Shown piece after piece: positions 1 to 19,122 of a stretch of DNA of 64,000 nt. Both the position numbers and the translations under genes were made by a program. The stretch comes from Octopus sinensis (Eukaryota): positions 18,538,001 through 18,602,000 of the forward strand of contig NC_043023.1 of assembly GCF_006345805.1 (NCBI RefSeq). Direction: 5' to 3'. Under the pieces are notes generated by a model. It had not been told where the DNA came from, made no database searches, and worked only from the letters and a program-made list of their open reading frames with translations. Numbering within the stretch: position 1 is the stretch's first letter; every line of letters begins with the position of its first letter.

Positions 1-1593
1 TGTATATATAAAAGTATACATATATATACACATATAGAGAAATAAAAAGGTATGATGTGTGAATAAACAATATTGTATAAAGAAAAGAAAAAGATAAGCA
101 ATTATAAGATATAAAATAATATACATAAAGTAAAAATATACATATATATATAAATATACATATATATATATATATAAATATACATATATATAAAAATATA
201 CATACATATATATATATATATATATACATATAAAAGTTATATGCACATTAACAGATATTTTGTTGGATGGCCGTTGACTGTTCAGGAGTTCATTATACAT
301 ACATACATACATTTATATATAATCATCATACATACATACCTACATACATGCATACATACATACAGGCATACATACATACATAAATATATATACACACACA
401 TATATATGCATGTATGTACGTAATGTATGTATGTATGTAAGTATGTATGTATGTATGTATGTATATATGTATGTATGTATGTATGTATGTATGTATGTTT
501 GTTTGTATGCATGCACAAAATGCTTCTCTTGATGTATCATATTCACATATATGCAACAGGCACTCGTAGTCCATCACGCAAGTTCACAAACAAATACGTG
601 CTGCAACTGGGTGTGTGTGAAATTATACGAAATGACAAGTTGAAAGAGCGGGAAAGAGAAGATGCGATGAATATATCAAGAAGACTGGTCTAACTTACAA
701 ATATCTTAAATTGGGAAGATTTTGGAAGGTTCCTGGTTTGATTTCGTTTATATGATTGGAATACGTTGTCCTGTAACATAAATTTCAGTTGATTAGAAAT
801 TGTGTAGAACAATATCGGTGATAAAATGTCACGCATTGTGGATAAAGAACTGGATGATGGAGAAAGGGTAACTAGATTATAATGACGTTGAAGATCATGA
901 TGATGGGTATGATGGTGGCGATGTTAGTGGTAAATATTATATGAAGGAGGAGGAGGGGGAGGGGGAAGAGGGGAGGAGAAGGAAGAATGTGGTGATGGTG
1001 TTGATGACGATGATGTTATGATGCTAATGATGGGATTAATTAACTTGGTTGTAATTATTTGTGAGGGTGTTGTCGATTATGGTTCAGGATACTGATGATG
1101 ATGATGTTGATGGTGATGGTGTTATGATGATGAAGCAAACGATGATGAACTATACGATATTGATGATTAAAATACAGATGGCAAAGACCCTGGGGTCATT
1201 CATGATGACAAGAACGGGGACGATTAGGGTTAGGGTGAGGGTTAGGTCATGGCGTCGATGGTGGTGACATAAATAGTGCAAGTATTAGTTGAGAAGAAAA
1301 GAATAAAAATAGTTGAAAGAGTAAGAAGGAGAAAAAGGAAAAGAAGTTGAAGAAGAATGAAGAGAAAAGAAAGAACAGAAGAAGAAGAAGAAGAAGAAGA
1401 GAAGACGAAGAAGGAGAACACATGTTAATACCGTTACATACAAGAATCTATGCACAATATGAGTGTGTGTGTGTGTGTGTGTGTGTGTGTCGAAATAGAC
1501 ACACTCTTACATAGATCTCTATATATGTATACACATGTATACATTTCCGTGTGTGGGCTCGCATGGGGGGGGGGCAGAAGTATGTAGAATTGG
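1..1593. repeat. Segmental duplicate of 15304-17203 (carries LRR exon E6/E2)
   Basis: Colinear; the intron next to the exon is ~97% identical (4 differences in 130 nt at 771-900 vs 16020-16148). The 15.3-kb copy has a larger (GAA)n tract. Confidence 0.9.
699..770 (-). CDS. LRR exon E6 (72 bp, phase 2/2), paralogue of E2
   Basis: tatgttacag|...|gtaagt; (L)TTYSNHINEIKPGTFQNLPNLRY(L). One consensus Leu is replaced by Thr. Confidence 0.82.
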
Positions 1594-1595
1594 GG

Positions 1596-3190
1596 TGCTC
1601 AATTGTAAATGAGATTAAGATAAAGAAACATTGATTAAAGAACAAACATCAAATGTGAGTCAACCATTTTATATATAACACCATACCTCAATCATTTAGT
1701 CATATGTAAATATTACCATGGTCCTTAAACATATAAAATATACATTTACATAAAAACAGAGAAGGTAAAAATATATATGCGAATAAAATAAAAAATATAT
1801 AGAACAGCCTATCAAAAAGGTAAATATAAAAGACTAAAAATTCCTAAGAATTATAAAGCGTGTCATGCTACAAAAACAACTAATAAACTAAGATAAAACA
1901 AAATATCAAACGACTAAAAATATTTTTAAATGTTCTTTTTTACTCCCTTCACAAAACGTACGTCCAAAAAGTTCAATTCTTAAAACCATGGTTTGTTACA
2001 GTCCATGAGCAAAGAGATTTCCACAAGGTCAATTCAAACAAACCTATGGCCATTTCGATTTTATTAAAGTGCATAACGGCAATGTCCCCCTCTTCAGGAT
2101 GAACAGGAACCAGGAAACACGCACAGAGCAAAACTAAAAAGTTCATACAACGCCACATGGCTAATTTTAAGATAAACCCGTCATTGCAACAAAATTTTCT
2201 AACACATAAAGAAACACCGAATTATTTTATTGCTAAACATGCAGGTGGCTGTTGTTAAGAGAAATTTATACTCGCTGGTTTCAAAACCCTATAAAATTTA
2301 CCCTTATTTACTACATCTACTTTCATTTCTAAACTCTTTCGGAAAAGTAGACGAAAACTTATGGGTGTAAAAAGGGATCACCTCAATAAATTTATTTAAG
2401 CCCAAAAGACTTAAGGATGGCAAGGGATTCCCTTACACATAACTTTCACTTATTGAAATTAACTCTGAAATAAGGAGCCCTCGAAATAACAGACCATTCA
2501 AGAGAATATCTTTTAGTTATTCCTCTTTAAACTGTGTATATAAGAATCAAGTGTAGTAGAATAACAGTATTCTTCGTTGGAAAACGAATTCATGTGAGCC
2601 CTATACATAGTCTTAAGATTTACAGCACTGCCTATATAAAACTTATCCAAATTAACATCCTCTTTAACAAAGCATTTATATATTGTTTAATAGAGAGGCA
2701 AAGCCAATCAAGGAGACATAATACAGTGTTTCTACAATTATACGATTTACCAAAGCCATTCCTAACTTTATTACTACAACTGACATTATTTGTCTGGCTT
2801 CCCACCTTCTTTCCTTCAGATATCCCATTACTGGGATTCGATAAGACCGGTGGGAGCAAATGGTTTGTAGCACTAAACTTAGGCATATAAGAGAATACCT
2901 GGCCAGAACCAGGGTTTTCCAGCAGAAGAATACTTCCTCAGCCCTTTCCCAATTAACTTGCTTCTATTAAGAGACGCAATAATGGAGGTCATACTTGGCG
3001 TTACTGAGTAAGAGAATTTGATGGAAGACTTATTGCAAATGCTGCAGTATTTATGATTGTTTGGGAAATTCTTCTTCAGAATCTTAAACAACAATTTGGT
3101 CAAGGTTCTTTCTCTAAGAGAAAAAGGCAGGGGCGAACCATATTGTATCCTGTATGCTAGAACGTGAGTTCTTGCTTTTATTGTCTCCTC
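1596..3190 (-). mobile_element. Penelope-like element 3' portion (RT C-terminus + GIY-YIG endonuclease + pLTR), copy 1, decayed
   Basis: Minus-strand frames give IWFAPAF..TKLLFKILKKNFPNNHKYCSICNKSSIKFSYS (RT thumb), YNCRNTVLCLLDWLCL, and IYKCFV...FYIGSAVNLKTMYRAHMNSF (GIY-YIG), with stops and frameshifts. Confidence 0.85.
2040..2101 (-). ncRNA. Hammerhead-like motif in Penelope pLTR (also 6153-6214 and 9053-9114)
   Basis: CATC-CTGAAGA-G(G/A)...TC-GAAA-TGGCCA-TA^GGT: intact core and palindromic stem III ATGGCCAT, but weak stems I and II. Confidence 0.5.
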
Positions 3191-3546
3191 TCTTCTAGTA
3201 TTTCGCTTCCTCTATCTATTCCTAACATCTTTACATATGTCACACCCTACAATCTCGATGGACTGGATCCACCCACTACCAGAACACATGATAACGACCC
3301 ATATATATATATATACATGCGTGCATAAAATGGTTCGTCTGATGTGTCACACTCACATATATAAAAACAGATACTCTTATTCCCTCAGAGATGACATTCA
3401 AAAGCAATCATACGTTCTTATTAGGGGAGAGAGAGAATATTGGGAGTGAACAAATGAGAGAGTAGGAAAGTAAGGATATGAAGATATTAAATATTTAGAA
3501 AGATATTGTCAATGAAATGCTAGCAACAAGTCTGATCTTTACTTAC

Positions 3547-17570: not shown

Positions 17571-18118
17571 ATATTATTGGTGAATTGAAGAAATGGAGCT
17601 GAACGAAGATTGAACAGAAATCGTTTTATTTCATTCTACACGTGTTTCGAAAGGCACAATTTACCAAAATCCGATTGAATAATGAGACCATATTGTGTCT
17701 TTATCTTCAGGAAGAAATAGGAAATCCGTTGGAAAAAACAAAAACAGAACAGAGGCGGAGCAAAACAAATCGAACTAGGCTCCTAAGAGCCCATGGCAAA
17801 ACTGTTTATCAGTGTATGTTGAGAACCGGGGGTTGAAGATTTTAACGGGTCAGGCAGCGGTCATTCCTGTGGGTGCACAGGAATGACCGCTGCCATGGGC
17901 TCTTAGGAGCCTAGTTCGATTTGTTTTGCTCCGCTTCTGTTCTGTTTTTGTTTTTTCCAACGGATTTCCTATTTCTTCCTGAAGAGAAAGACACAATATG
18001 GTCTCATTATTCAATCGGATTTTGGTAAATTGTGCCTTTCGAAACACGTGTAGAATGAAATAAAACGATTTCTGTTCAATCTTCGTTTAGCTCCATTTCT
18101 TCAATTCACCAATAATAT
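17571..18118. mobile_element. Foldback/MITE with ~228-bp arms and an internal 19-bp perfect hairpin
   Basis: 17571-17798 is the reverse complement of 17891-18118; GGCAGCGGTCATTCCTGTG-ggtg-CACAGGAATGACCGCTGCC at 17853-17894. Confidence 0.85.
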
Positions 18119-18943
18119 TAAAATTCAATTATCCGCACCAACGCACGGTTGCAACACCATATGTTCGTACCTCCAACCGTGCTGTCTTCTGCTGTGATTT
18201 TTGCTACCAAGGTATCGGCTAAACTTTTGATTAATCTGCTACAAGATTATTCATCTTTCTATTTCACATAATATATATATATATATATATATATATATAT
18301 ATATATATATATATATATATATATATATATATGTTATGTTTCCCAGCTCTGATCGCCCAAATCTGATTAGCAAATGACCGACAATTCGCGTTCCATCACT
18401 AGTATAAATTGTCCACCCCACAGTAAAATCGTACAAAATCAGTCACGTCATCCATAAAGATTACTTCTCATTAGAATGGATTATAGATCCATGCTTGCTT
18501 TTCTTTTTATAGAACTAGAGAACAATATTTCGATTTCGAGCAGTACCATTTAAAATTACATTTATCAGAATAGTTCTTCCATTTTATACCCTCCGTCATA
18601 ATAAAAATATATACAGCTGGTTTTGCTAAGACCAACAGTTTTCATATTTTCCATTCCTGGAATATTGCCATAAAGAATTTTGATGTGATAATTAACATCA
18701 TCAAAGTTCAGATATTGGTCTCACCCTATCTTTCTGTGCAATACTGTAAAATATAGATTCCATATAAGTTAATATGTACATGGAAAAAGTCTACTTGACT
18801 TCGCGGTGGGTAACGTATTTACTACAACATAACATCATGTTTTAAACCTGAAATCAACACCTCAAGGTATTAGTTAAGAATATAATCGACAAGAAATTAA
18901 AGCATTGAATGTGGAAAATATACAGAAATGGTCCAAAACTTAC

Positions 18944-19122
18944 AGAGTTTGAGTATTCGGTGGAATGGGTCGAGGGACCGAAGTCAGGTTGCGAGATGAA
19001 CAATCTATAGATGTAAAACTCCGACAAGTGCATTTAATGCAAATGTCCAATGCAGCACGAGATTCCAGAAATAATCTCAAAAAGAGTACCAACACAAAGG
19101 TCGATTTAAGTTGATGAAACAT
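18944..19122 (-). CDS. First coding exon of an extracellular LRR protein: signal peptide + LRRNT cap
   Basis: Translates MFHQLKSTFVLVLFLRLFLESRA-ALDICIKCTCRSFTSIDCSSRNLTSVPRPIPPNTQT(L): hydrophobic leader, then the C-x2-C-x-C...V/IDCSxRNLTSVPxxIP LRRNT pattern. Polypyrimidine acceptor (ttttcttctttaacag) at 19141-19142, 18 nt before the ATG. Phase-2 donor CT|GTAAGT at 18943. Confidence 0.9.

Follow-up and report, generated by a model that had tools for sequence, protein, structure and literature searches.

Single-repeat 72-nt exons in a probable octopus-expanded LRR adhesion receptor gene of Octopus sinensis

A 64,000-nt stretch of the Octopus sinensis genome (NC_043023.1, here C27, positions 18538001-18602000; hereafter the window) contains a series of short exons that each encode a single leucine-rich repeat (LRR). 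Which gene do these exons belong to, and what does such an arrangement permit? Region 699-19122 of the window is probably the 5´ ectodomain-coding part of one copy of an LRR adhesion G-protein-coupled receptor (GPCR) from an octopus-specific expansion; on the sequence, we give this reading a probability of roughly 0.78. The gene adds a poorly annotated member to an octopus receptor expansion that is already known, and its exons provide a mechanism for changing both the repeat number and the binding face. It adds detail to a familiar picture; a new one would open up only if the choice of cassettes proved to be regulated.

A uniform array of LRR exons

All features of the LRR gene lie on the minus strand, which was missing from the initial annotation and is supplied here. 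Exon 1 (18944-19122) starts with an ATG at 19122 and ends at the phase-2 donor CT|gtaagt. It encodes a putative signal peptide with a hydrophobic leader, MFHQLKSTFVLVLFLRLFLESRA, followed by an LRRNT cysteine cap, CIKCTCRSFTSIDC, that scores just below the Pfam LRRNT cut-off (25.1 bits, E=1.3e-5; cut-off 25.8). Five cassettes follow in transcriptional order: cassette A, (L)NLTFNHINEIKPGTFQNLPNLTT, at 15948-16019 (acceptor ttacag|G, donor TT|gtaagt); cassette B, (L)YLNNNDIKELKAGSFQNLPSLGG, at 7660-7731 (acceptor taacag|A, donor gtaagt); cassette C, (L)YLHENNISEIHVEAFQKLPNLVD, at 5346-5417; cassette B´, (L)YLNNNDIKELKAGSFQNLPSLRT, at 3547-3618; and cassette A´, (L)TTYSNHINEIKPGTFQNLPNLRY, at 699-770. 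Each is exactly 72 nt long and is bordered by ...acag upstream and GTAAGT downstream. Each contributes one base at its start and two at its end, which places all introns in phase 2 and gives one 24-residue LRR per exon. Splicing exon 1 to the five cassettes in silico yields an open frame with the junction codons CTG, TTA, TTG, TTA and TTG.

The initial annotation had described five one-LRR exons of 72 bp with AG/GTAAGT borders, leucine codons at every junction and a spliced product running from signal peptide through LRRNT to the repeats. All five quoted peptides are encoded on the minus strand, the junction codons agree exactly, and the product has an open frame. As a control for chance, open 72-nt AG…GTRAGT intervals were counted on each strand and in shuffled sequence. 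The minus strand holds five such intervals, all five with an LRR motif, while the plus strand holds none and the shuffled sequence 0.4, none of them with the motif. Because every interval on the minus strand is an LRR and none arises on the other strand or by chance, the observation is confirmed.

The array does not end at 699 but continues to the left of the window with seven further cassette positions on the same strand. Six of these are intact, with AG/GTAAGT borders (C27:18532305, 18531051, 18528706 (C2), 18524215, 18520378 and 18518408 (E)), and one, psiB (C27:18527661-18527732), has lost its AG acceptor. The array therefore totals 11 usable cassettes of five types plus one without an acceptor, in the order A B C B´ A´ D B C (psiB) D B E. 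The encoded protein carries tandem LxxLxLxxN-x-I…F…L repeats, and the RefSeq model of the gene matches Pfam LRR_8 with E=5.8e-65. This model, XP_036369864.1 (P0001; 'leucine-rich repeat-containing protein 15-like', LRRC15-like; 461 aa), already includes all five exons of the window, so that, contrary to what had been proposed, the gene is not hidden. It contains ten of the cassettes at 100% and omits the intact cassette C2 (18528706).

The receptor body and the identity of the gene

The exons that would complete the receptor were located outside the window, those past the linker by mapping octopus 'ADGRG6-like' proteins back onto the genome, an assembly of 2.72 Gb in 13,516 contigs. They follow an adjacent, near-identical copy of the array immediately downstream (copy X; the window's own is copy Y), which starts at exon 1 at C27:18469855 and carries a receptor body on the same minus strand. 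Copy X is followed by an LRRCT-like exon, MMCGCYLPALVNY…C…C (C27:18421185), to which Pfam LRRCT gave no hit, and by linker exons at C27:18415431, 18412575 and 18411069. Further downstream lie a pair of cysteine-rich exons resembling a hormone-receptor module, mapped from the homologous proteins (C27:18407047 and 18405369), four GAIN exons (C27:18402090 to 18399038), a GPS exon with the sequence CSCDHLT/SFALL (C27:18398118-18397960; Pfam GPS 53.5 bits, cut-off 22.5) and an exon for the first transmembrane helix, TM1 (C27:18396576-18396496). A GAIN domain ending in a GPS, the hallmark of adhesion GPCRs, is thus provided by exons that are collinear after the adjacent copy. Splice phases worked out by hand are consistent from cassette E to TM1 at all junctions but one in GAIN. 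The extension to the left proposed in the initial annotation, which named LRRCT, hormone-receptor module, GAIN and seven-transmembrane (7TM) exons, was thus largely upheld, with collinear exons for the parts up to TM1 behind the adjacent copy; the remaining helices were not found among the best 150 candidates of each search. The 72-nt phase-2 exons, together with the collinear LRRCT-to-TM1 body after the neighbouring copy, bear out the earlier description of an LRR receptor-type gene.

The predicted protein would begin with a signal peptide, the LRRNT cap, approximately 10-13 LRRs of 24 aa, LRRCT and a linker domain of ~105 aa, and would continue with a cysteine-rich hormone-receptor-like module, GAIN with its GPS autoproteolysis motif and a transmembrane region. 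We infer that the window's copy is joined to an equivalent receptor body past the scaffold gap. The default transcript would contain most or all cassettes, and its product would be a cell-surface receptor with a ligand-binding LRR face.

Relatives of the locus point in the same direction. The GAIN/GPS region is 45-78% identical to members of the octopus adhesion GPCR expansion. Octopus proteins account for 39 of the 40 matches to the GAIN region, the other being a sea-cucumber protein (E=6.5e-6), and the exon matches are clustered, with dozens on C27 and a few other contigs. Membership in the expansion is thus assigned by octopus relatives and clustering, not by a tree within group 3 of the published classification. 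The adhesion module and the GAIN/7TM part occur within single proteins in gene models of relatives. In the paralogue P0159, LRRNT, LRR, GPS and 7tm_2 are found in one protein (the 7tm_2 Pfam score of the paralogues is 100 bits), and in O. vulgaris P0143 a signal peptide-LRRNT-LRR-LRRCT part is joined to a GAIN/GPS/TM1 part nearly identical to this locus. The full-length paralogue LOC115215701 combines a signal peptide, LRRNT, ~17 LRRs, LRRCT, a Ly6/uPAR-like module, a linker, a cysteine-rich module, GAIN-GPS and 7tm_2. A single LRR per exon is likewise found in a paralogue on C9, in contrast to other octopus LRR genes, whose arrays lie inside single open reading frames (ORFs). The 72-nt phase-2 cassette structure is therefore common to at least one checked paralogue.

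Several observations weigh against this identification. At the GAIN junction 18401206/18400277, no splice with canonical GT-AG borders keeps the frame, which may be due to a consensus error of the contig of copy X, a missed micro-exon or a real defect. The Pfam GAIN score is below threshold (18.4 bits; cut-off 26.5). Exons for TM2-7 were not found at the locus among the best 150 candidates of each search with O. vulgaris 7TM queries, and the closest O. vulgaris model likewise stops after TM1. The body exons lie 97 kb from the window's array, behind copy X, and the whole assembly contains one LRRCT copy at ≥83% identity. A 100-N gap terminates the contig of the window 2.7 kb past cassette E, so that the LRRCT exon of this copy is unassembled and its junction to the body is unseen. 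Between the two arrays (C27:18470000-18518400), the search for C-terminal exons returned transposon or repeat ORFs and the scaffold gap alone.

Published work already contains the family. Ritschard et al. 2019 (PMC6408891) described a group of adhesion GPCRs specific to octopus, of whose 22 sequences 5 have LRR domains, and reported that its genes are co-localised and show signs of positive selection. The present locus shares with this expansion (Ritschard group 3; RefSeq 'adhesion G-protein coupled receptor G6-like') the LRRNT-LRR-LRRCT and GAIN-GPS-7TM plan, tandem clustering on the same chromosome and, in a paralogue, one LRR per exon. Unlike many paralogues, the locus has no Ly6/uPAR-like module separating LRRCT from the linker; TM2-7 are unseen and the RefSeq model is a fragment. 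Ritschard et al. 2019 (PMC6408891) gave no account of the cassette exon structure or of cassette-level copy-number differences. No account of cassette exons in these octopus receptors was found in the literature, and nothing on the family was found in PMC9712504, PMC13428168, PMC10084454 or a bioRxiv preprint on the octopus visual system.

Duplication, divergence and copies of the array

The five exons of the window comprise three types (A, B and C) and two recent duplicates (A´ and B´). Cassette A´ lies in a block (1-1416) that is 88% identical to 15304-16629 around cassette A. The duplicated unit of exon B´ and its introns (1595-4185) is 96.3% identical over 2596 bp to its partner at 5705-8298 (substitution divergence 3.4%), and a third, partial piece of the B unit without an exon is present at 8602-9278. 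The flanking introns of A/A´ and B/B´ are 94-97% identical, and those of different cassette types still reach 42-72% where the background is 23%, which supports a common origin of all cassettes. The shared flanking-intron similarity and the origin by serial exon duplication that had been proposed for these exons are both upheld by the duplicated blocks and the flanks. As judged from these similarities, the cassettes have multiplied by kilobase-scale segmental duplication. The two acceptor classes, ttacag|G and (t/a)acag|A, mostly alternate along the array, which suggests an ancestral unit of two exons.

Mobile elements have been copied together with the exons. The 8.2-kb intron between A and B contains retroelement-like ORF fragments (11174-14464, minus strand; ORFs of 210 and 192 aa). 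These gave no hit in a Pfam search and are, by our own reading, a putative long interspersed element. The retroelement was copied along with the A unit, as C27:18534631-18538001 matches 18549042-18552917. A dispersed repeat of ~940 bp is present in each B-unit intron (2305-3240 and 6420-7355) and in more than 35 further genomic copies at 74-83% identity on many chromosomes. This repeat is presumably a transposable element copied together with the cassette. TA-rich microsatellites are located at 4660-5100, 8293-8410 and 17400-17580, at or beside the ends of duplicated blocks (the B-unit blocks end at 4185 and 8298), and these tracts may be sites of unequal recombination.

Because each LRR occupies its own symmetric phase-2 exon of 72 nt, repeats can be gained or lost by recombination without a break in the frame. 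In the mechanism that we propose, unequal recombination of kilobase-sized units of exon plus intron would have built the array, adding or removing whole repeats in frame.

After duplication, the cassettes diverged chiefly at five solvent-exposed x positions on the predicted concave, ligand-contacting face. Across the 11 units of 24 aa, N6, I8, F16, L19, P20 and L22 are invariant, and most of the variation falls on the x residues of LxxLxLxxN (positions 2, 4, 5, 23 and 24), the residues lining the concave β-sheet face. The divergence was compared in four independent duplicate pairs (A/A´, B/B´, C/C2 and D/D2) with 400-bp flanking introns as reference. In the x-position codons, 18 of 60 nt differ (30%), compared with 215 of 3136 nt in the flanking introns (6.9%) and 7 of 228 nt in the framework codons (3.1%). 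The x-position codons thus diverge ~4-fold more than the introns (Fisher's exact test, p=1e-7) and the framework codons less (p=0.03). Exon 1 behaves similarly. Relative to three near-identical copies, the differences of the window's exon 1 are confined to two clustered patches, CTCRSFTSIDC instead of CSCQGNRINC in the loop between the last LRRNT cysteines and PNTQTL instead of PNIEYL at the x residues of the first β-strand face. This pattern fits diversifying selection on the binding surface and agrees with the positive selection reported for the expansion; it could also have come about by patchy gene conversion from other paralogues.

The cassette content differs among near-identical copies of the locus. 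Copy Y reads NT-A-B-C-B´-A´-D-B-C-psiB-D-B-E. Copy X contains one more D-B unit and, owing to a 365-bp deletion, no E, and the unplaced contig C11699 carries a third version of the array without one B-C pair. The change in cassette copy number that the initial annotation envisaged is therefore seen among these copies, whose substitution divergence is 0.6-1.8%. Shifts in cassette number between copies that differ by ~1%, combined with the excess of change in x codons, provide a concrete mechanism for new binding surfaces: unequal recombination followed by diversifying change would let the receptor family explore them. Besides that of the window, exon 1 occurs at C27:18469679-18469855, at C27:18630112-18630288, where it stands alone, and at C11699:20608-20784. 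The exons of copy X are those of the window's copy with ten 1-bp deletions, and seven cassette exons are frameshifted. A decayed pseudogene was considered for copy X and ruled out: in C27:18443925-18460635 single-base deletions relative to the window's copy occur at 0.8-1.3%, in introns as in exons, which indicates a poor consensus with the look of unpolished long reads and not decay.

The strongest alternative concerns the number of genes: the window's copy would be an allelic haplotig, or redundant assembly, of the adjacent full-length copy that was placed in tandem by scaffolding. We regard this as a serious contender that falls somewhat short of even odds. The window's contig (C27:18515740-18629269) is bounded on both sides by 100-N gaps (18515640-18515739 and 18629270-18629369), and homology to the neighbouring contig reaches both of its ends. 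The best blocks diverge by 0.7-1.0% in substitutions, which is close to the heterozygosity of octopus, and a single LRRCT copy is assembled. Conversely, three array versions and four exon-1 copies exceed what two alleles can supply, unless several individuals were sequenced; the copies differ in structure; the window's exon 1 has two private divergent patches; and a second fragment of the receptor body is probably present on the unplaced contig C346. The array exists in three versions, one more than two alleles allow, which makes at least one very recent duplication likely; some of the versions may be allelic. The haplotig reading changes the copy count and not the identity of the gene.

Exon use and comparison with known systems

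The adhesion receptor reading assumes a largely constitutive transcript. The initial annotation had raised a further possibility, that alternative or combinatorial splicing of the cassettes, together with variation in their copy number, lets one locus yield many ectodomains with a function akin to Dscam or VLR diversity. In-frame skipping of any subset is formally possible, because all cassettes are 72 nt long and of phase 2-2, and the cassette number varies between near-identical copies. The RefSeq model leaves out C2 despite its intact splice sites. The RefSeq isoforms X1-X4 of LOC115215701 (C9:13816475-13845851), which has four tandem two-LRR exon units at 1.83-kb spacing, differ by whole two-LRR units. 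X1 (1394 aa) contains four units, X2 and X3 (1298 aa each, of different sequence) contain two units each, a different pair in X3, and X4 (1250 aa) contains one; the differences thus amount to one to three 48-aa units. At the level of annotation, these isoforms are the only hint of combinatorial splicing, and isoforms across near-identical tandem exons can be explained equally well by copy-number alleles or by ambiguous mapping of spliced reads. All donors have the same strong GTAAGT, which favours constitutive inclusion, and approximately 11 cassettes of five types would give a modest diversity. We consider combinatorial use of this kind unlikely.

The known diversity systems also differ in mechanism. 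Lamprey VLR genes are diversified somatically, by gene conversion from cassettes that do not serve as spliced exons, and insect Dscam1 uses mutually exclusive splicing with docking and selector RNA pairing. The octopus locus resembles them in no more than general concept, modular LRR units in VLR or cassette-exon diversity in Dscam1; neither donor cassettes nor docking/selector pairing was seen, and there is no sign of somatic rearrangement. All cassettes lie in one orientation and in transcriptional order with AG/GTAAGT borders, unlike VLR-type donors, which have no splice sites and flank an incomplete germline gene in mixed orientation. In a crude test restricted to intron 1, the 9-mers shared by the cassette flanks had no reverse complement there except (TA)n, and no docking- or selector-like complementary elements were thus found.

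A second departure from the adhesion receptor reading, which we judge quite unlikely, takes the RefSeq model at its word: the gene would encode a stand-alone secreted LRR protein of 461 aa without a receptor body. The sequence of XP_036369864.1 does close with MAVW and a stop codon behind the linker domain, and by eye no hydrophobic C-terminal segment is evident. However, the model is a patchwork of three contigs that spans two scaffold gaps. Its exon 1 is taken from C27:18630288, its cassettes come from the window's contig, and its 3´ exons (18421185-18410914) sit beyond a second copy of the whole array. The last four codons derive from a fragment resembling a short interspersed element (SINE) at C27:18401122, within a GAIN intron. 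From its canonical phase-1 donor, the linker exon splices in frame to the next receptor exon (ELFDE-M-VCNENTT), as in P0124, P0125 and P0128. In addition, over its C-terminal 160 residues the model is homologous to octopus 'ADGRG6-like' proteins, in their N-terminal part. The RefSeq "LRRC15-like" secreted protein can accordingly be reread as the ectodomain of an octopus-expanded LRR adhesion GPCR, of which the truncated form could be a real minor isoform. The SINE-like sequence (…aggagTGGCTGTGTGGTAAgtagcttg…) has two other copies upstream of the gene, at window positions 26696 and 27682.

That several 5´ modules, each with a promoter, LRRNT exon and LRR array, share one receptor body in the style of protocadherin or UGT1A genes, which combined with cassette skipping, and with modules unlike in cassette number and concave-face residues, would make the locus a diversity-generating cluster that gives each cell or tissue its own ectodomain by a protocadherin-like logic built from LRR exons, is very improbable with or without the skipping: three exon-1 copies and two arrays do lie upstream of a single LRRCT-to-TM1 body, and the RefSeq model joins cassette E to the LRRCT exon across 97 kb, but the module boundaries coincide with scaffold gaps, the probable body fragment on C346 would be a second body, and Gnomon may have chained the exons merely to dodge the frameshifted consensus of copy X.

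For the adhesion receptor reading, the closest vertebrate parallels in overall plan are ADGRA2/ADGRA3 (GPR124/GPR125) and ADGRG6 (GPR126), in which an adhesion module is followed by a hormone-receptor-like module, GAIN/GPS and a family-B 7TM. The plan proposed for the octopus gene has the same order. The details differ, as ADGRA proteins have few LRRs plus an Ig domain, and ADGRG6 has CUB, PTX and SEA domains and no LRR. Passages of PMC6408891 and PMC2571103 state that ADGRA proteins begin with LRRs. Nothing indicates orthology to these vertebrate receptors, and 'G6-like' is an automated RefSeq name.

The exon organisation itself has other parallels. The LGR and glycoprotein-hormone receptors (FSHR, LHCGR, TSHR and LGR4-6) have one LRR per exon of ~70-77 nt, phase-2 introns and exon-skipped variants. 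The octopus gene shares with them the single LRR per short phase-2 exon, a parallel that the initial annotation had drawn as well. LGR proteins have a rhodopsin-type 7TM without GAIN/GPS, whereas the octopus relatives of the locus carry Pfam 7tm_2. A 7tm_1 directly after an LRR ectodomain and hinge, as expected for an LGR, was not found, and GAIN/GPS follows the ectodomain instead. In Tetrahymena, LRR exon arrays consist of uniform 90-bp exons with phase-2 introns and a shared junction codon; they are fast-evolving, reach tens of thousands of exons and are proposed to have expanded clonally by unequal crossing-over (Xiong et al., 2019, PMC6564038). Exons of uniform length, phase-2 introns and a common junction codon characterise the octopus array too. 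The Tetrahymena exons are 90 bp instead of 72 bp long, belong to a ciliate, encode unrelated proteins and occur on a far larger scale.

A scan of the window found no tRNA genes. A 29.5-kb satellite with the 16-bp unit CAGGATATCAAGATTC (30515-59985; ~1845 copies, 88% matches) lies 11 kb upstream of exon 1 and accounts for the very flat base composition between 32 and 60 kb. A 184-bp tandem repeat of ~6 copies (20745-21855) lies in a GC-richer stretch (20-24 kb, 45% GC), and sequence related to it is also present upstream of the other exon-1 copies.

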